DNA of 64,000 nt from Leidyana gryllorum EB-2025a. Lineage: Eukaryota; Protista; Apicomplexa. Below the pieces are notes generated by a model, which worked only from the letters and a program-made list of their open reading frames with translations, ran no database searches and had not been told where the DNA came from. Position numbers and translations under genes: made by a program. The stretch spans positions 62,001 through 126,000 of the forward strand of contig JBLWGC010000121.1 in the NCBI GenBank assembly GCA_048772705.1. The letters run 5' to 3'. Shown here piece by piece: positions 3,958 through 36,242 of the stretch (position 1 is its first letter; the number at the start of each line of letters is the position of its first letter).

Positions 3958-6900
3958 ATGGCGGTCGCCGATGGGCCGGTGGACAGGGCAGAAGGATATG
4001 AAATGCTTCTGAGCGCTTCGAGGCATAAGATACCTGCCTATTACAAGCGTCATTTGCCCAAGTATGAGAATCCTGAATACAACCCCCATTTCTTGTCCGC
4101 CACATGGCCACACATCTGGTCGTTCAATCTCTTCTTGGACTTCTATACTCAAGAGATGGTGAAGAGTCTGGAGTCCGTTTACATTGACGCGACAGCGGAC
4201 CCGATGCGAACGGACCTTGATTGCACGCACTTTCCTCCAGAGTATCTGAAGATCAGTATTTCGAAGGTTGAAATTGGGAAGCCCCGGCGAACTGACAATG
4301 AGGGTAACGCGAAGGCGGACCCCCGTATGTTCCCGCGACACGCTCGGACTGCCCACATCACATATGGGGCACCATTGTACATTACGTTCGTCTGGAACAA
4401 CACTGGTGGGAAGAAGGTGAAAGAGAAGAGGGTATTCAGTGGGCTGTGCCCAATTATGGTTCGGTCCAAGAACTGCCATCTGGCTGACATGTCGCCGTTC
4501 GCGATGTGTTGGTACGCTGGGGAGGACTTGAACGAGCCCGGTGGATATTTCATTGTCAATGGGAACGAGCGAGGAGTTCGATTTGTGGTACAGCAGCGTT
4601 GTAACTACGCGATTGGTATCAGAAAGTCTCGTTTCCGGACCCGAGATGTTCTCTATACGGAGTACGCGGTGTCTTTCCGTGGGATGCGACGGGACGGAAC
4701 TTCCACTAACAACTTGATATTCTTCACTGAGGATCACCAATGCGTTTTCCGTATCCTGCTGAACCGTGGAGAATGGACGTGTCCCTTCTGGACGTTGGCG
4801 AAGGCTCTTTTCCCGACCGTTCAGCTCAAGCTGCTCAAAGAGAAGCTTTTGGATGGAGTGGAAGACTCGGAAATGCTGTTCGAAGTTGAGGCTCTGTGGG
4901 AGCAGATGGTTCAGAGTGATACCCTCTACACTGATCAGGATTTCCAGGAAGATCGGGTAAGTCAACAGAGAGCAATGAGTGATGTTATATCAATTCTTTC
5001 GCAGTATTTGGCACAGTTGGGTCAGTTCTTCTGGGACGGAGTCTCGACTCGTCTGCCCCCGGGATCGGGATACGCAGCTGCCGGCCGCTTTGTGATAAAT
5101 GGTTATGTATTGGTCCACACGGACAGTTGGAACGGCAAATTGGAGACTCTCCTTCACATGTGGCGGAAGCTGTGGGCTATCAGACGTGGCGACATTCCCC
5201 CGGAGAACATTGATTCCTTTGCCCTTCAAGAGGCTTTGGGTCCGGGTCAGTTGTTCGCTTCGGTGCTGAAGGATGGGTTGTTCAATGTGCTGACGTCCAT
5301 TCGTCTGGGTTACATGAATGAGATCCGCCAGGCGAAAGCGGTTGGTGAAGATCCGATCAGTATCATTCGATCGGAATCGCTGTTTGAGCAGATCGTCGAG
5401 AGGAACGCTTCTGGGCCCGCGAAGGCGCTGTCTTTCTTTGTGGCCACCGGAAACATCAAAACGTATCAGTTGGATCTTCAACAGACCACTGGATGGACAA
5501 TCACCGCTGATCGTCTGAATATGAATCGTTTCATTGCCCACTTTAGAGCAATTCATCGCGGAGCTTTCTTTGCGAAGATGAGGACAACCGAAGTTCGAAA
5601 ATTGATTGGGGAAACGTGGGGTTTCATCTGTCCAGTCCACACTCCCGATGGGCCCACTTGTGGGCTCCTTCTCCATCTTGGTCAAGATGCTCTGGTGGTG
5701 TCAGACCCACCTGACGGTCGATTCAGAGCCGCTGTCATTGACTATCTTCTTTCGCAAGGGGTCGTCCCTGACGTCACTGGCCGTGTGATCTCGCCCGCTT
5801 CCAATGTCAAAGACTCCTTCCCCGTGGTGGTCGACGGTGAGCCTCTTTGCCGTCTCCCCCGAGACCTCTTTGATGAGTGGGCGACAAAGTTCCGCGAAGT
5901 CAAGTTGAACAGATCCCACGGGTTCCCCGCCCAATGTGAGCTCTGTTGTTTCAAGAAGGGCTGTGGTGCCTTTGAAGGTATTTATCTTTTTTCGTTCCCT
6001 GGCCGTCTCGTCCGGCCGGTTCGCGATGTCGCCACTGGACGCGTCGAATGGATAGGGCCCCTGGCCCAGCCCTGGCTGAGAATCGCCAGTTCCGATCGCG
6101 ACGTGGCCAATGCCCAAGAAGCCATCAGTCTCCAATCTGCTCTCATACATAAGCTCACTGACGCCGGACAGCCAAACCCCCCCGTGGCAGACTTTCAGGC
6201 AACCGTCGGTGCCTTCTCGGAAGCTCTGAAGAAGCCGGACCGAGAGGCCAAGCTGCTGGGATTGCTGGGTGTCACCAAACATGAGACCAGAGCCAAAGAG
6301 ATTGTTCAAGTTTGTCCAATGGATTACGATTACGTCGAGGTCTCACCCACATCCTTCTTGTCAATCAATGCCAGCTTTACCCCTCTCTCCAACCACAACC
6401 AGTCTCCAAGGTAAGGAGGGTCTCTCGCCCGGTCTTCCAAATCACCTTTTCGCTCTGCAGGAATATGTATCAGTGCCAAATGCTTAAGCAAACTATGGGA
6501 ACCCCATACCACAATCTCCACTATCGGACAGACAATAAAGTCTACCGCATCTTATTCCCCAATCGACCACTCGTCCGAAACAGGGATTATCGCAAATACG
6601 ACTTTGACCCCTACGCCTCTGGAACCAATGCTATTGTGGCCGTCATCTCCTACACCGGATTCGATATGGAAGATGCGATGATTATCAATAAACACTCCAT
6701 GGAACGCGGATTCGCCCACGGCTGCGTCTACAAGACTAAAGTCGTGGAGGCCGCTCCGGCCGGAACTCGTTTGGTGAGTGCAATCAAATTGTTTGACAAT
6801 CAATGATGGTTATCTCCTGCCAGATGGACGCAAAGAACTTTGTTTTCGCCAACGTGACGCCTTCGGGAGGCAAATACGACACTCAACTCGATACCGATGG

Positions 6901-8344
6901 CTTCGCCCCCATTGGCACTCTTCTGAAACGAGACACTCCACTCTACAGAACCGAGGACCTCCGCAAGAAGATGGCTGGCGGTATCGACGTCGACGGTCAC
7001 TGTGGCCACGTCCACACCTACCACGATGATGAGGAAGCCTATGTGGACAAGATCATCTTGACCAACCCGGAGGACCGTCACAACAAATACGGAGCATTGG
7101 TGCCCTGTCAAAGAGCTATGATCACTCTTCGATGTGTCAGAAATCCAATCATCGGTGACAAATTCGCTTCCAGGGCGGGTCAGAAAGGTATCCTGTCTCT
7201 GTTGTACCCACCAGAAGATATGCCTTTCTCGGTAAGTCAATATTTTGAGCTAAACACCAGACTAAATCTTCTTCTGTTCAGCCGTCGGGTATCACACCTG
7301 ATATCGTTTTCAACCCCCACGGCTTCCCCAGTCGTATGACTATCGGTATGATTATCGAGAGTATGGCGGGGAAAGCGGCTGCCATCCACGGATCCTTCCA
7401 AGATGCCACTCCGTTCAGAGAGTTCCCGCGTCAAGAAGTCGTTGACAACAATCGCTGGATCAATCAAGGTGGATACAATGGATGGACACGCCGGGGCAAG
7501 AGATACATGACCGAGGAAGAACTGGCTGATTACAAGGTCGATAACCCTGTTGATTACTTCGGAAAGGCACTTTTGACATCAGGATACCAATATTACGGCA
7601 CTGAACCCTTGTATAGCGGTATCCACGGTGTCGAAATGGATGCTCATATCTTCATGGGAGTCATCTACTATCAGCGGCTGCGACATATGGTCTCGGATAA
7701 ATGGCAGTGCCGTTCCACCGGACCCATAGACTCACTGACTCGTCAGCCAGTCAAAGGTCGAAAACGTGGAGGTGGTGTACGTCTGGGTGAAATGGAACGT
7801 GATGCCCTGCTGGGACACGGGGCTTCGTTCATGTTGCAAGATCGTTTACTGAACGTAAGTATTGACTTTGTTGTTCGGAGACACGCACACACGTGTTTGT
7901 TTGCAGTGTTCTGATGCGCATCAAGCGTTCGTTTGCCCGGTTTGCGGTAGCGTCTTGTCACCGTGCTTGGATCTCGGGAAAGCGAGAGCGGTGGGTGGCA
8001 CGCAGACGATCCCGGCTTGTCGCGTGTGTGACGTGCCTTGCCGTATGACGACCCTACCGTATATTTTCCGTTACGTATCTAACGAGTTGGCGGCGATGAA
8101 CATCGCCATTCGATTAAAGTTGAGAGAGTGCGATCAGGACATCAAGGTGGATAGCAAGCAGCCTTTACATGTAGGGGCGGCGATGGCACGGTTCCCGGCT
8201 CTAATCGAGAGCGCTCCTCCGCCGCCGGCAAGAGTGGAGATTGAGGAGGGTGCAACGAGTCAAGAAGAGGCGAACGAGCCTCAGGGAGAGGTGGCTAAAG
8301 TTGAGCTTATTCCAGTGAAGACTAAGGAAGAGCCGAAAAATTGA
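3958..8344 (+). CDS. RPA2: RNA polymerase I second-largest subunit (RPA2/RPA135)
   Basis: Motifs [94 protein letters not shown] and a C-terminal CxxC zinc site. Five short GT-AG introns (~4958, 6411, 6773, 7232, 7855). Confidence 0.96.
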
Positions 8345-8813
8345 TTATATGCCGCTATTCAATCTAGGGAACTCGACAGTACGAATAGGGAATGGTGACT
8401 GGTAATTGGTTGGCAGAGAGATCCAACTGGTTGGGTAGAGAGTTGTTGGTAAATTTGAGGGTACCATTGATGTTTGTTGAGACTCTTCGATTCGATTGAG
8501 TGTGAACTCTGCTAATTTGCCCATGGCCTAAGTGAGAGGTGCTCTTTGTTTCTTGGGAGAGTTAGGTTGCAGATTGGTTTCTAACCTGTTTAACTATTGC
8601 GGAGTTTATTGCTCCGTCGGCCACAGCGTTCATGATGGGTCTGTCCTCCGCACTGACGACCTGGAACGCTCGGGCTGACAAAGTTGCTGCTTTGGCTCCC
8701 AGTAGAGCTAAGCCGGACATTCGGCGACGTTCGGCTGGCTGTCCATTTGCTGTTGCTTGCGTCCCCAACAGAGAGGTGGAGCAAAGGAAGAGAGCCAAGC
8801 TGGCGATCAACAT
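8345..8813 (-). CDS. Small putative secreted protein (2 exons)
   Basis: Signal-peptide-like start (MLIASLALFLCSTSLLGTQATA). An intron GTTAG...CACTTAG (~8585-8528) joins an open second exon (AMGKLAEF...LNSGI*) whose TAA is at 8345-8347. Confidence 0.55.
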
Positions 8814-8873
8814 ATGTTTGTCTTTGCCGTACAGCAAGGATGCTTCCCCATTTTGTACTGGTCGAAAAAATAA

Positions 8874-10496
8874 ATGTCATCCGTAACTCGGGGCTGCCAT
8901 GTCATTATCCAGGACCTGGCGACTAAACAGGCTCGAGTCGAGTTCATAGGCGAAGGGCGTTCCGAGATTAAACAATGTGCGAAGCGCCCATCAATATTGG
9001 TCAATACCATATTGGGCTTGCCGTTCGGATCAGTACTGCAATTGCAACAGAACAAATGGGTACCTGCCCCTCGTCTCTTGGAGAACGAGCTCGTCCAAGG
9101 TGAGTTTGCACACTTGCCGCTTCGACTCTCTTCGTGTGTGTGTGTGTAGAGGTTCTGAAGGCTGCAGAGGCGGCTGATGGTGGTAACGGGATGACAGACG
9201 GAGGCGATGAGGGAGACTCGTCTCCTTCGTCACCGCCTGCGAAGAGACATAAGCCAGAGTTGTTGAACGACGATAATACTGCTCAATCACTCACTCCCGA
9301 AGAGGTCTTGGCTCTTAAAGAGAGTGGGATGGGCCATGTAAACTTTCTGAGTTCGTTATGTAGCGGCTCGCAGAGCTTCGACTACCGGAGCGACTTCGCT
9401 AAAGAGAAGTATGTGCTGCGCAAAATGCAAAGGCACGTTGTTCAGATGATGCTGTTGAAGCCGACCGCTCGTAATCTGGCAATAGCCTATGGAGAGCCGA
9501 TCAAAATCGGGGGCCTGAAACCCGAGACGGCTGCTCTGATGCTCAACGAAGCGAACATCACCTCGGGAAAAAAGGTGATGGTGTTCGACCATTCCACGGG
9601 GTACCTCACAATGTGCGCTCTCATGCGCATGGGAGGAATGGGACGTCTATACGCTCTCACTGAGAAGAAGGGCCTCTCTCAGCACATGGTATCTCAAGCC
9701 GATTTGTCTGAAGAATGGACAAATGTGATGTGTGACATCCCTATGACTGCTCTTCAAACTGCGTTGCAAAAGGGTGATTTCAACCACCCAGACATACTCG
9801 ACAAACACGAGTGGTTCAAGCGGTATGAGAACATTGATTTCGAGGTAAATGACCCCACGCGTCTCGAAATCGATCGAGAGCGGGCTCTCGCCGCGATGGA
9901 AAGACGCAAGATACGTCGAGTACGGCGGATGGACTTCTGGGATACCCTCGGCAAGGAAGGCGTCCAAGCCTTCATTGGGAACATAGATGGTACCAGAATG
10001 GAAGCCAACAATCCCATCCAGCTGGCCAACATGTTAAGCGAAGTGTACCAAGTGGCTGAAGGGATCCTACAGAGCGGTGGCCGGATTGTCCTTTACAGTT
10101 CCCAAATGAATCCATTGGTCGATCTGTATGCTTACATGAAAGCGCGCAAGAATACCTGGACTGCATTGCGGTTTGAAGAGTATGGATTAAGACGCATTTC
10201 GGTAAGCTAAATTATTCCCATCCGACTGGCTTCGTTGGAGGAATCCATCCTGGTGTGCTATTCGTTGTTTGTGCCCTTTGCAGTCGCTCGACTTTTGCTC
10301 GCGCGCTTCGTGTGTTTGTTTGTGTGTGTGCTCGCCGTGTCTCCCCCTCATTTTGGACATCACTGTGACTTTTGGCTGTCCGCAGACGCTTCCGGGCCGC
10401 AGTCATCCGCAAATGGAAAGTACATTGCGGATTTTCGAAGGTTTCGTGCTGACAGGATCGCGAATGACTGAGACTGAGATTGATCCAACTGAATGA
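8874..10496 (+). CDS. TRM6: tRNA (adenine-58-N1)-methyltransferase non-catalytic subunit (TRM6/GCD10)
   Basis: ILGLPFGS; AQSLTPEEVLALK..G..(F)DYRSDFAKEKYVLRK; ANITSGKKVMVFD. The terminal exon TLPGRSHPQM...GFVLTG follows a 184-nt intron (10202-10385). First intron ~9100-9149. Confidence 0.9.
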
Positions 10497-10553
10497 GGAG
10501 GGATTGGTGCATGCCAGGTGGGGGGAGTCCCGATTGCTCTTGAGTTGCGAGGG

Positions 10554-10979
10554 ATGCAGTCGTCGTCTGGCGAGATGCCCGCTGGGCTATTGCCCATTGT
10601 GGTTGAAAAGATGGTTCAGTTGGATGACCTGCGAACTCTGGAGAACAACACAATGGAAATGTGGCGGGCGTTGACACGGTATGAAATTCAGAAGGAAGAG
10701 GAGATGAAGAACTTCAAACGTCGGGAACAGGCCGAGATGGACGCTCTGCAGGCTCAGAACGCCCAGCTGCGGGCCGAGTTGCTAATTAGAGATGCTCACT
10801 TTGGGGTCGTGACACCCCCTTGTTGCCCACCATCGTCACAGACACCCGCTCCTTCTTGCTGCTGTTCGTCACCTGGGTGTTGCTGTTGTTGTTGTTGCGG
10901 CACCAGCGAATGCACCGCCTCGTGCCCCTCTGGCGGAGGGGGCGTGAGCGGCTGGGCCAATTGGAGACGACGACGGTGA
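10554..10979 (+). CDS. Hypothetical coiled-coil protein with Cys-rich tail
   Basis: Open frame with a heptad-like charged segment (LRTLENNTMEMWRALTRYEIQKEEEMKNFKRREQAEMDALQAQNAQLRAEL) followed by a poly-Cys stretch. No family recognised, and competing minus-strand frames exist. Confidence 0.4.
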   Translation: MQSSSGEMPAGLLPIVVEKMVQLDDLRTLENNTMEMWRALTRYEIQKEEEMKNFKRREQAEMDALQAQNAQLRAELLIRDAHFGVVTPPCCPPSSQTPAPSCCCSSPGCCCCCCCGTSECTASCPSGGGGVSGWANWRRRR

Positions 10980-11417
10980 CTGTGTGAAGAGGAGCGGAGA
11001 GGACGACCGCCCCGGGGCTGAGAGAGAAAAGCTTGGTGGTTGCTGCTGTGGGTGGCCGGATAGAAGTTCAATCTTCTTCTTGTGCTTCGTTAAGGGAAAG
11101 GTGCCGATCGGCTGGTGTCGGAGATCGGGCGCTGCGGTTGAACTGAGTAGAGGCAGGAGCAAAAGGCGATGAGGAAGAAAAGGGCTAGGAAGACTACAAC
11201 TCCGAGTACGAGCAGCAAGGAGGCCTCTTGAGTGATTGGGTCGTTTTTCTGTTGCATTAGGGTTGATGATCCAGTCGCGCACATTTTAGAATGACCATGC
11301 AATGAACTCTTGCTTGCTGACTGACTGACTGACTGACTTACTTCCTCCTCTTTGACAAGCTACTCTCTACTTCGCACTCGTGCTGGGAACCTATTACTCA
11401 TTCACTCCGTATTCACA

Positions 11418-32608: not shown

Positions 32609-33738
32609 ATGGTAATGATTTGTTTGTGTGGTGCGGTGTCTAATCTGTAATGTGTTTGATATTTCAGCCGGCCAACTTCTCCCAGGAAATTTCGAAGGAA
32701 TTGTCTGAGACTGCTCGCGCGATCGCTACGCGTGGGAAAGGAATTTTGGCGGCGGACGAGTCTACTGGGACCATTAAGAAGCGATTTGATGGCATAAATG
32801 TTGAGAACACAGAATCGAATCGAGCGGCGTACCGTAAATTGTTGTTCACGACAAAGGGTTTGGGCGAGTACATATCTGGCGCGATTCTGTTCGAGGAGAC
32901 TCTGTTCCAGAAGGTGGGCGAGGAGAGTCAAGTTGATTTCTTGAAGGCAAACGGCATCATTCCGGGGATTAAGGTCGACAAGGGGTTGGTCGGCTTGCCA
33001 GGCACCGATAACGAGAAGTCCACACAGGGACTAGACGGATTGGCGGAGCGCTGTCAGAAATACTACGAGGCGGGCGCACGTTTTGCCAAGTGGAGGGCCG
33101 TATTGGAGATTGACGAGGCGAAGAACAAACCTTCTGCTCTCTCCATTCAAGAAACCGCTCACTCATTGGCTCGTTATGCGGCAATCTGTCAGCAGAACAA
33201 GTTGGTTCCAATAGTGGAGCCGGAGATCCTGACTGACGGTTCTCACTCCATACAGCACTGCGCTGAAGTATCTGAGAAGGTATTGAGTGCTGTTTTCAAG
33301 GCCCTGAACGACCACCATGTGCTGCTGGAGGGTGCTCTCCTGAAGCCGAACATGGTGACGCCGGGTGCCCAACACGAGAAGAAGGCGACTCCGGAGGAAG
33401 TCGCGTTTTATACTGTGCGCACCCTCCGTCGTACAGTGCCTCCTTCTCTCGTGGGAGTGTGCTTCTTGTCGGGAGGACAAACTGAGGAAGAAGCGTCACT
33501 CAACTTGAACGCTATGAACGCCATGGAGCAGCAGCATCCGTGGGTTCTGACTTTTTCCTATGGACGGGCCCTACAAGCGTCCGTTCTGGCTGCTTGGAAG
33601 GGGGACAGCAACAACTTCGCCGCTGGCCAGGAGGCCCTCACCAACCGCGCCAAGGCTAATTCCGAGGCTCAACTCGGCAAATACAAAGGCGGCGTTGCGT
33701 CTGCTGGAAACCTCTACGAGAAGGGCTACGTCTATTGA
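32609..33738 (+). CDS. FBA: Class I fructose-bisphosphate aldolase (first exon is the ATG only)
   Basis: [14 protein letters not shown]; GIKVDKG; RFAKWRAVL; VPIVEPEIL; LLKPNMV; FSYGRALQ; C-terminal [11 protein letters not shown] at 32609-32611, then intron 32612-32667. Confidence 0.98.
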
Positions 33739-34126
33739 TTTACTCTCTCAAAAGCAATTAATTATTCCATTGTGACACATACGCTGTCTCTATGTGATCG
33801 ATCGATCAGTAGGTATCCTACGCACGGTCCACCATCAGAGGAGCGGCGGCCACTGTTCTGAATGTTTCGAAAAGTTAAGAATTCCTTTCACGGTCACGCC
33901 CCCGTAAAGGAAGAGAAGTGATTTTATAGTGAGATTCTGTCCCGTATCCGCAAGAGAGATTCATACACCAATTTTAGAATGAGCCCAAATCCTAGCGTTG
34001 AATCTCTGCATCCTGTCAAGCCATCCGCTCATTGAAATGAACTCTAACTAACTGACACCCCCCCGAACGACTAATCGGCATTGAGAGAAAAACTTATTCA
34101 AACCATAGCTAGCACCACCCCCCAAC

Positions 34127-34636
34127 ATGGCCGACATGGAGGATGACTACGACTTGGGCGCTGACGACGACGTCTTCAATGAAAACGAAGAAGATGACTT
34201 GGGCGAAGCAGAAGAACTCTCAAACAATGAAGACGATGAGAATCGCGAATGTGGAATGCCCGATCCTCACCGCCCCCTATCCAAACCCGTGTGAGCCGAG
34301 CCACCCCGACCCCCACACCCAAACACACACACCCTCACTCTCACAGCGAGGGCCCGAGACGCACGTCGCCCTACATAACCAAGTTTGAACGGGCCAGAGT
34401 CATTGGCACCCGCGCTCTCCAAATAAGGTAGGTGCCGGCAGAGTTACTGGCTGCGAACCCCGGCTTCTGCACGCAGTTTGGGCGCACCGGTGACGGTTCC
34501 ATGCGAGGGAGAGTCGGATCCAATTATCCTCGCCGAAAAGGAACTGGCGGCTAAGACTCTGCCCTTCATTGTGAGGCGGTATCTACCGAATGGTGAATAC
34601 GAAGACTGGCCTATTGATGATCTCATTGCCGAGTGA
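34127..34636 (+). CDS. RPB6: RNA polymerases I/II/III common subunit RPB6
   Basis: Acidic N-terminus; RRTSPYITKFERARVIGTRALQI; PIILAEKEL..LPFIVRRYLPNGEYEDW. Two introns. Confidence 0.96.
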
Positions 34637-34653
34637 TATTACCCATTTGAACT

Positions 34654-34667
34654 ACGTCAATTGACGT
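34654..34667. promoter_or_regulatory. Perfect 14-bp palindrome ACGTCAATTGACGT between RPB6 and the RT-derived gene
   Basis: The sequence is its own reverse complement. Any regulatory role is inference only. Confidence 0.3.
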
Positions 34668-34846
34668 CCCGATGGTCTACCGGGATGATGGATTCCGTTC
34701 GGCCACCATTTTGGGCTCTTGGCCCTCCCGCGAAATTATAGATAAGATACCAATTTGAAAGGCGCAGGTGGACTGCTGGATGCGTGTTTGGCTGGAAATG
34801 ACAGGCTGCAGGGTGGGGTGACTGATTTGTGAGGGAAAACCACAAA

Positions 34847-36223
34847 ATGTCCCGACTGCGTGTTCAACTGGGATCAGGCGAGGAGACCACACTCGTGTGT
34901 TTGTCGCCTGGGAGTGATGCCGATCTTATTTCTATCAAAGGTCTTTCTGCAGCCGGTGTGGCTGAAGCGGATCTGAAACCAGCCACACACTCATTGGCTG
35001 ATGGCCGATCAGTTCCCATAGAATGTGTCGGAATCGCTTGCGTTAAAGTCAGAGTTAATCGAATCAGCAAGAAACACAAATTCTATGTGGTAAGAGACAT
35101 GCGATACGATTTGGTGCTGGGCCGTCCTGGTATGGAGAATTTTCAAATCGCCCTCACACAGCCCCAACGCCAAATGATGAGTCCCTTGTGTACCCTGGCA
35201 CCCTTACTGCCTAAAGGCTGCACTGAAGCAGCCAGCATTACTGCCTTTTTGAACAACAACGCACGCTTTTGGTCTGGACCACAGACGCAGACCGGAGTGA
35301 TCGAGTCTCGGATCGTTACTTTCCGTACAAAACCAATTTCTATGGCTTGGATTCCTTGGCCTGAACCGCAGGCTACCAGGTTGCGCAAATTGCTCGATCA
35401 GCTCATCAATGAGGGGATAGTTGAAGAGTCCAATAGTTCATGGGCAGCACGGGTCATCACTGACGCTGCCATAGACGAGAATAATGTCATGTTCTTAGTC
35501 AATTTTAGTGCTTTGAATCGCAAGATTCAACGTCTGGTGCCGTGGGCACAGCCTGAACGACCCGGCTGGGATGTCTTCTATGAATCCAAATACTTTTCAA
35601 CGTTCCGTATCAAGAATCCCTACTATAGCATCCCCCTCGAAGCGAATAGCAGGGAGAAGACTGCATTCCTCACGCCGTACGGAAGGTATCACTTCACAGT
35701 ACTGCCTATCGGTTTGGTCAAAGCCGACGGTTGCTTTCAAATCCTCATGGATTCCATTCTCAACCACTGCCGATACCGCACCGTTAGAGAATACCGAGGC
35801 ACCATCTTAGTCGGAGGCCGCACAGCTGCCGAATGCAGCCACGGCACGCTCGTAGTCCTCCGCACACTGAAACTCGCCGGCCTCCAGATCGATCGTTCAT
35901 CACTGCAATGCCTCAAAACCGAAATAGACTTCATGGGATACAGAGTGTCAGACGGGTATGCCTACATCCCGGGAGAAATTGAGAACAAGGTGCTCAACAG
36001 CTCCACTCCCGAAAACAAGACAGACCTTCAAAACTTCCTCTCCCTTCTCACGCCTTATGCCAACTTTATCGAGGATTGGGATGTCCTCACTCGAGACCTC
36101 GCGCTGCAAACAAGCATGGGCATCGAGCAATATGTCTGGGGCAAGAAACAGCAGGTTGCCTTCGATTCTCTCAAACGTTCGCTTGCGTGTAGACCGTCCA
36201 TTCCGCTAAGTTCGTGCGTATGA
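34847..36223 (+). CDS. Ty3/gypsy pol-derived protein (aspartic protease-like + reverse transcriptase-like), catalytically inactive; probable domesticated gene
   Basis: Protease fold: LADG...G...FYVV..YDLVLGRP, with DS/TG replaced by SPG. RT fold: LINEGIVEESNSSWAA, FSALN, REKTAFLTPYGRYHFTVLPIGL, FQILMDSIL, EIDFMGY, LQNFL..Y.NFI, W...QQVAFDSLKRSL. YxDD is replaced by YRGT and the motif-A Asp by Arg. 458 codons with no stops, frameshifts or introns. Confidence 0.88.
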   Translation: MSRLRVQLGSGEETTLVCLSPGSDADLISIKGLSAAGVAEADLKPATHSLADGRSVPIECVGIACVKVRVNRISKKHKFYVVRDMRYDLVLGRPGMENFQIALTQPQRQMMSPLCTLAPLLPKGCTEAASITAFLNNNARFWSGPQTQTGVIESRIVTFRTKPISMAWIPWPEPQATRLRKLLDQLINEGIVEESNSSWAARVITDAAIDENNVMFLVNFSALNRKIQRLVPWAQPERPGWDVFYESKYFSTFRIKNPYYSIPLEANSREKTAFLTPYGRYHFTVLPIGLVKADGCFQILMDSILNHCRYRTVREYRGTILVGGRTAAECSHGTLVVLRTLKLAGLQIDRSSLQCLKTEIDFMGYRVSDGYAYIPGEIENKVLNSSTPENKTDLQNFLSLLTPYANFIEDWDVLTRDLALQTSMGIEQYVWGKKQQVAFDSLKRSLACRPSIPLSSCV

Positions 36224-36242
36224 TCCAAGTTTCGATTTTTCG

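Follow-up and report, generated by a model that had tools for sequence, protein, structure and literature searches.

A candidate non-catalytic host gene derived from the protease and reverse transcriptase module of a Ty3/gypsy element in the gregarine Leidyana gryllorum

Where hosts have taken genes from LTR retroelements, the source is nearly always gag, env, protease or integrase. Co-option of the reverse transcriptase (RT) fold with its chemistry removed is rare, and RTL1, the one described case that was found, is centred on the capsid. RT polypeptides with a structural, non-catalytic role are also known from retroelements themselves, namely subunit B in the dimer of Ty3 RT and p51 of HIV-1 RT, the latter without RNase H. 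Neither differs in sequence from its active partner, and the two act inside the replication complex of the element itself. Mammalian RTL1 has been described as keeping the protease (PR) and a likely inactive RT (PMC11011659).

In Apicomplexa, a survey of mobile elements has reported gypsy elements in gregarines, and the word-stem 'domesticat' is absent from it (PMC9141347). A literature search of incomplete coverage found no paper on the domestication of a retroelement gene in Apicomplexa. An earlier note on this DNA had known of no comparable gene in apicomplexans; the absence of a precedent holds for the apicomplexan literature found, and outside this group RTL1 is a precedent for a kept PR with a likely inactive RT.

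The window that was analysed is a stretch of 64,000 nucleotides of Leidyana gryllorum, and it contains an open reading frame (ORF) with a PR-like and an RT-like domain. The PR-RT ORF derives from a Ty3/gypsy element, has lost all of its catalytic aspartates, is single copy and is without element termini. A stand-alone PR-RT gene in a gypsy-rich parasite genome of 15.5 Mb, with at least 90 open gypsy pol frames, would provide a simple system for asking what use can be made of a dead RT fold. In this report, the locus, its relationship to the resident elements and the explanations for its persistence are described and discussed.

The locus between RPB6 and NLE1

The PR-RT ORF lies between the genes RPB6 and NLE1, and the coordinates of its parts are listed in Table 1. 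The stop codon of RPB6 (34634-34636) is separated from the ATG by a gap of 210 nt, and the stop codon of the convergent NLE1 gene (36245-36243) is 19 nt away from the stop of the PR-RT ORF. An alternative in-frame start, GTG at 34829, would give a protein of 464 aa, and a stop seven codons 5' of the ATG closes the frame. At its other end, the protein terminates 7 residues past the conserved W...AF..LK..L...P, which in a multiple alignment is right before the start of RNase H in the homologues. The boundaries of the ORF are also domain boundaries.

Table 1. Coordinates in the window of the PR-RT ORF, its parts and its immediate surroundings
Feature	Position	Strand	Remarks
PR-RT ORF	34847..36223 (stop included)	+	Intact, intronless, ATG start, 458 aa, single copy
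5' spacer, RPB6 stop to ATG of PR-RT ORF	34637..34846	+	210 nt; presumed promoter and 5' UTR
Retropepsin-like N-terminal domain, residues 1-107, degenerate	34847..35167	+	Colinear alignment with PR domains of resident elements
S20-P21-G22 at the catalytic D-T/S-G position	34904..34912	+	Domain-only alignment; G22 column invariant
PR-RT linker, residues 108-145	35168..35281	+	About 20 residues shorter than the linker of resident elements
RT fingers-palm-thumb fold, residues 146-451	35282..36199	+	AF2, Foldseek, phmmer
R254 replacing the catalytic Asp of motif A	35606..35608	+	Alignments with Ty3 RT, resident pol and public homologues
Y316-R-G318-T319 replacing YxDD (motif C)	35792..35803	+	Same alignments; G318 and T319 on both Asps
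NLE1 last exon	36326..36243	-	Convergent gene; read directly as ...GHADE, 49-nt intron, VFAVDWSPDG...LWSH, stop

Because the two stops are 19 nt apart, the 3' UTRs of the PR-RT ORF and NLE1 must overlap. Such a close spacing of convergent stops (about 20 nt) is nothing unusual in gregarines: in G. niphandrodes (KK211471.1:75350-92912), NLE1 and a DEAD-box helicase gene are convergent (local 8001-9563 (+) and 9587-11038 (-)) with 23 nt between them. Overlapping 3' ends thus seem to be routine in gregarine genomes. The last intron of NLE1 (36327-36375, minus strand, gtaag...tag) is 49 nt long. A mechanically called ORF at 36268..36852 runs through this intron, which results in a false C-terminus of NLE1; the true last exon is the one given in Table 1.

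Beyond NLE1, an intronless ORF of 747 aa with a Chromo domain (PF00385, E 1.2e-7, residues 476-515) is present at 38110-40350 (+) of the window. This gene was considered as a sister piece of the same element and was rejected. Its sole similarity to resident chromovirus pol is over 42 residues of the C-terminal chromodomain (40% identity, E 2e-4), and homology to integrase and to RNase H is absent.

The assembly comprises 15.5 Mb in 237 contigs. A six-frame search of it resulted in at least 92 scored RT matches, most of them within stop-free frames of 1000-1544 aa. At the DNA level, neither the PR-RT ORF nor its flanks occur a second time in the genome. The ORF is also single copy at the protein level, where the best resident RT match is only 29% identical (E 9e-36) and no paralogue exceeds this value. 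The nearest resident match is a complete Ty3/gypsy (chromovirus) element on contig C123 (C123:72000-81038) with a gag of 262 aa and a pol of 1119 aa, and this pol carries the DTG, the motif A Asp, YxDD, RNase H and integrase. The terminal repeats of this element, visible as a 109-nt stretch up to the contig end (local 4766-4874 and 8931-9039), are 99% identical, and its gag ORF (local 4875-5663) starts at the first base directly after the repeat stretch. The resident chromovirus load is unusually live for an apicomplexan and includes several very divergent families, with examples on C123 and C35.

No direct or inverted repeats were found within 33700-37000. In addition, blastx of the flanks against the ORFs of the resident elements revealed no remnants of gag, RNase H or integrase, and no LTR remnant was found in the 5' spacer. 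LTRs, gag, RNase H, integrase and multiple copies, by which a complete or decaying LTR retrotransposon is recognized, are all absent from the locus, and what is present is an immobile, single-copy locus among host genes, as for a domesticated gene. The earlier note had described an intact, intronless ORF of 458 aa that ends where RNase H would begin, with flanks of 210 and 19 nt that leave no room for LTRs, gag or integrase. This description was borne out, with both distances exact, and the near-identical, LTR-flanked copies that the note had named as counter-evidence were not found in this assembly.

A kept RT fold and a degenerate protease

The RT part matches Pfam RVT_1 with 40.5 bits, against a curated cutoff of 29.6. 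In a phmmer search of solved structures, the Ty3 RT (4ol8) was the best match (E 1.8e-19, residues 178-451), followed by the RTs of CaMV, MMLV and foamy virus. The AF2 model has a pLDDT of ~90 across residues 125-450, and its Foldseek matches include the RTs of CaMV, MMLV and Ty3 (E 1e-19 to 1e-22, TM about 0.6), in line with the RT fold that had been proposed. Also, language-model features group the 458-aa protein with PR+RT fragments of pol. Ty3-type RTs reportedly have no separate connection subdomain, and the C-terminal helices (residues 375-447) are therefore assigned to the thumb and linker. Of the protease-RT-thumb-connection layout that had been described, the PR-RT order is supported, and the part called connection belongs to the thumb and linker.

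In the alignment with 4ol8, FTTLDLH of Ty3 is opposite FSTFRIK, and YLDD is opposite YRGT. Together with S20-P-G in the protease, R254 and G318/T319 confirm in the alignments that all four catalytic aspartates have been replaced. The replacements extend beyond these positions. Conservation of at least 85% among 37 gypsy homologues is seen in 68 columns, and the PR-RT ORF keeps 33 of these. Residues are kept or conservatively changed in 33 of the 46 core-type columns, versus 9 of the 22 polar columns (Fisher P 0.018). The conserved charged columns are kept in only 3 of 16 cases, compared with 11-16 in each of the 37 homologues. Conserved basic residues that contact the substrate in RTs have been substituted (R170P, K208A, R215M, R221S, K352S, H365Y and R405A), and the lost residues include the three Asps, R170, K208, R215, D219, R221, K352, H365 and R405, which contact the metal, the dNTP and the primer-template.

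Read from these alignments, the pattern of the RT half is that of a kept fold and a lost chemistry. Because the Asp triad and the lysine and arginine residues of the dNTP site are lost, the PR-RT ORF is a descendant rather than a working member of the Ty3/gypsy RT family. The RT part is still basic, with a pI of 8.7 and a net charge of +4 (the median pI of the homologues is 9.25). Since the conserved substrate-contact residues have been replaced, continued use of the canonical nucleic-acid cleft has become less likely, and this weakens the earlier proposal of a non-catalytic scaffold that binds nucleic acids.

In the N-terminal half, the retropepsin D-T/S-G motif is not present, and S20-P21-G22 is aligned in its place. 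S20 and G92, the latter in the L-G motif, are 72 residues apart, and DTG and ILG of the resident elements are 71-72 residues apart. The assignment of S20-P-G as the counterpart of D-T-G stands because the domain-only alignment is colinear, G22 is invariant and the spacing is equal. Another candidate for the catalytic motif, 'AAG' (residues 35-37), is opposite DTG in a whole-protein MAFFT alignment and was rejected, because the spacing and the alignment of the domain by itself speak for S20-P-G. With hhalign, a profile built from public and resident protease domains was matched to residues 61-104 only (E 4.8e-5, probability 68%), and the phmmer and blastx alignments to several pols begin at residue 58. 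Pfam gave no match on residues 1-130 even at E 10, in a setting in which the protease of the active resident element itself is matched weakly (E about 1e-3). The pLDDT of the AF2 model is 40-60 in the protease-like domain.

A two-copy model of residues 1-125 reached a score of 0.45, versus 0.01 for the best control. The three runs share at least 76% of the contacts, and the pLDDT is at least 73 (about 74). Of 30 solved homodimers, 21 reached the mark used for homodimer models, and of 23 single chains none did. The modelled interface consists of residues 2-4, 15-23, 70-73, 85-90 and 99-107, which correspond to the active-site loop on the dyad and the terminal strands, as in retropepsin dimers. 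This result shows likeness to retropepsin dimers rather than binding, and it may stem from the model's memory of solved dimers. At the level of the model, it supports the suggestion made earlier that the protease fold serves as a dimerisation module.

Relatives, selection and possible role

An exhaustive search of 1.84 billion representative proteins resulted in 30192 RT matches, which are ordinary pols with at most 33% identity, and no orthologue was found among them. A word-index protein search gave one ordinary RT with 32% identity and no orthologue, and a scan of metagenome contigs for the PR-RT ORF found nothing. Exact-sequence look-ups of the PR-RT ORF and of aldolase, in records from which the genome of the window may be missing, gave no match either. 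All three RT aspartates are kept in 142 of the 151 nearest public matches (150 of these from the representative search), and none of the 151 has lost all three. Among the sequences searched, the PR-RT ORF is shared solely by a relative that is ~98% identical. This relative was found in a public run from 2019 with a different organism label, as two short contigs that cover 34891-35151 and 36098-36274 of the locus. The neighbouring exons of aldolase, RPB6 and NLE1 were not found in the same run, which may be due to filtering or to a very low coverage. In three RNA runs, reads of this gregarine were absent, also on the aldolase gene.

NLE1 is matched best by Gregarina sp. (59%) and G. niphandrodes (53%), which indicates a gregarine that has no close relative in the databases. 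A syntenic orthologue between RPB6 and NLE1 in related species, which the earlier note had proposed as a check, was not found in the flanks of the two nearest gregarine contigs available: neither RPB6 nor an RT is present next to NLE1 in G. niphandrodes, where the convergent DEAD helicase is located, or in a Logan gregarine contig, where FHA and Aquarius genes follow. In both comparisons, synteny with RPB6 is broken and the species are distant (52-53% NLE1 identity), and the flanks therefore show only that the association of the PR-RT gene with NLE1 is not an old and fixed one.

The explanation that is preferred here, and that is probably correct, is a host gene that is selected, non-catalytic and derived from a retrotransposon. 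An ancient Ty3/gypsy (chromovirus-type) insertion would have been trimmed to its protease and reverse transcriptase module, and the gregarine would have retained this module as an intronless gene that codes for a protein and is present in one copy. The retropepsin-like N-terminal domain would then hold a homodimer that displays two dead RT folds without RNase H, comparable to the structural p51. The candidate protein would work without protease or polymerase chemistry, because the frame and the fold residues appear to be selectively kept and the catalytic aspartates are lost.

The first choice for a role of this protein is tentative: it may act as a decoy or interfering partner for the PR/RT or the RNA of the many active chromoviruses in the genome. 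A more specific version, in which the gag-less, doubly dead PR-RT is a dimeric decoy (a p51-like dead RT plus a dead retropepsin) against the protease, RT or RNA of the resident chromoviruses, is doubtful. The identity of at most 29% to every resident element and the loss of the canonical substrate-contact residues count against a decoy role. Dominant-negative poisoning of retrotransposon particles, as put forward in the earlier note, would be pure speculation. If the decoy role is true, it would represent the first case of a retroelement restriction factor that stems from pol and not from gag or env, as well as the first domesticated retroelement gene in Apicomplexa. The PR-RT gene could then exemplify a genome that turns pieces of pol against its own transposons.

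As the second choice for a role, the protein would be a nucleic-acid or protein scaffold of the host that has no part in transposon control, which is somewhat unlikely. As a full explanation, a domesticated gene unconnected with transposons would have a dimer of the dead RT fold serve as a nucleic-acid-binding or protein scaffold in routine cellular processes, as in the RT-like domain of Prp8. The case for selection is the same as that for the preferred explanation, and the basic RT part and the position of the ORF among housekeeping genes fit a scaffold as well. Also, the great divergence from the resident elements makes specific interference harder. The conserved substrate-contact residues have been replaced, however, and restriction to one lineage, with orthologues not found in other gregarines, is more in keeping with a conflict-type function than with a core one. 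This explanation is considered unlikely.

A functionless relic, in which the 1.6 kb between the two convergent genes would hold a truncated piece of an old retrotransposon whose frame is open by chance, is improbable. The lack of an orthologue in any other species searched, the degenerate protease half and a genome full of gypsy elements able to leave fragments would all suit such a relic, but the divergence of the ORF does not. In an ML tree of 45 RT domains, the end branch of the PR-RT ORF is 5.64 changes per column versus a median of 0.45 (more than 12 times as long); this long branch leaves the ORF unplaceable in the tree, and a resident family of origin is not assignable. Neutral decay was simulated from the homologous PR-RT segment of a resident element, with substitutions only, until the conserved-column retention of the PR-RT ORF was reached. 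This took 0.27 substitutions per site and resulted in a mean of 12 stops (minimum 2), and none of the 1000 runs remained open. A frame that is open at such divergence is hard to reconcile with a functionless relic.

Codon usage and the ~98% identical relative also argue against a relic. Using a codon table built on 13 host ORFs of the window, the codon log-odds are +0.122 bits per codon in the ORF's own frame and negative in the other five frames, compared with values of 0.03-0.25 among host genes and of -0.18 to 0.07 among the pol genes of resident elements. Codon usage is thus host-like in the sense frame only. GC and GC3 were dropped as discriminators since host genes and resident elements were not separated by them. 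Over 381 nt, the relative differs from the PR-RT ORF by five synonymous changes and three conservative replacements (A41T, D84E and V437I). These eight changes (91 synonymous and 290 non-synonymous sites) give a dN/dS of about 0.19 and a binomial P of about 0.02 for at least 5 of 8 being synonymous, in a small comparison in which part of the covered stretch overlaps the likely 3' UTR of NLE1. The preferential retention of core residues and the coincidence of ORF and domain boundaries are further points against a relic.

The four tests agree, and these indirect lines of evidence suggest that purifying selection keeps open the coding frame and maintains the residues that determine the fold. Regarding the host gene under selection that the earlier note had proposed, the gypsy origin, the dead sites and the single copy are firm, the dN/dS comparison that it had suggested points in the expected direction, and selection is indicated by indirect signs. 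The ORF might instead belong to an element that is non-autonomous or mobile to this day, or might have arrived recently from an unsampled lineage of retroelements whose PR-RT was already inactive. A recent arrival could explain the intact frame without host selection, and the many families in the genome would fit this alternative, but it is very improbable given the single copy at the DNA level, the absence of terminal repeats and other element parts, the host-like codon usage and the fact that a dead PR-RT is not maintainable by selection within an element.

Comparison with known systems

The preferred explanation, a selected host gene with a dead PR-RT, has its nearest precedent in RTL1 (PEG11), a domesticated Metaviridae gene that is likewise Ty3/gypsy-derived, single copy and immobile. 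RTL1 is built around a capsid (gag) domain and also keeps RNase H, whereas the PR-RT ORF has neither, and the PR-RT ORF has lost the protease Asp as well. RTL1 is also conserved across placental mammals and essential, while the PR-RT ORF is known from one gregarine lineage and from sequence alone.

Within the genome, the PR-RT ORF is matched best by the Pol of the resident chromovirus on C123, in which PR and RT follow in the same order and the fold is shared. In contrast to this element, the PR-RT ORF is without LTRs, gag, catalytic residues, RNase H and integrase. The foamy-virus PR-RT (7o0h, 7kse) resembles the PR-RT ORF in that a protease is fused to an RT in one chain, and Foldseek aligns about 465 columns, including the N-terminal domain. 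The foamy protein, however, is active and includes RNase H, and the rmsd of about 18 A indicates another domain arrangement in the model. With HIV-1 p51, the PR-RT ORF shares the absence of RNase H. It differs from p51 and from subunit B of the Ty3 RT in that it is a dead sequence, encoded at a host locus of its own.
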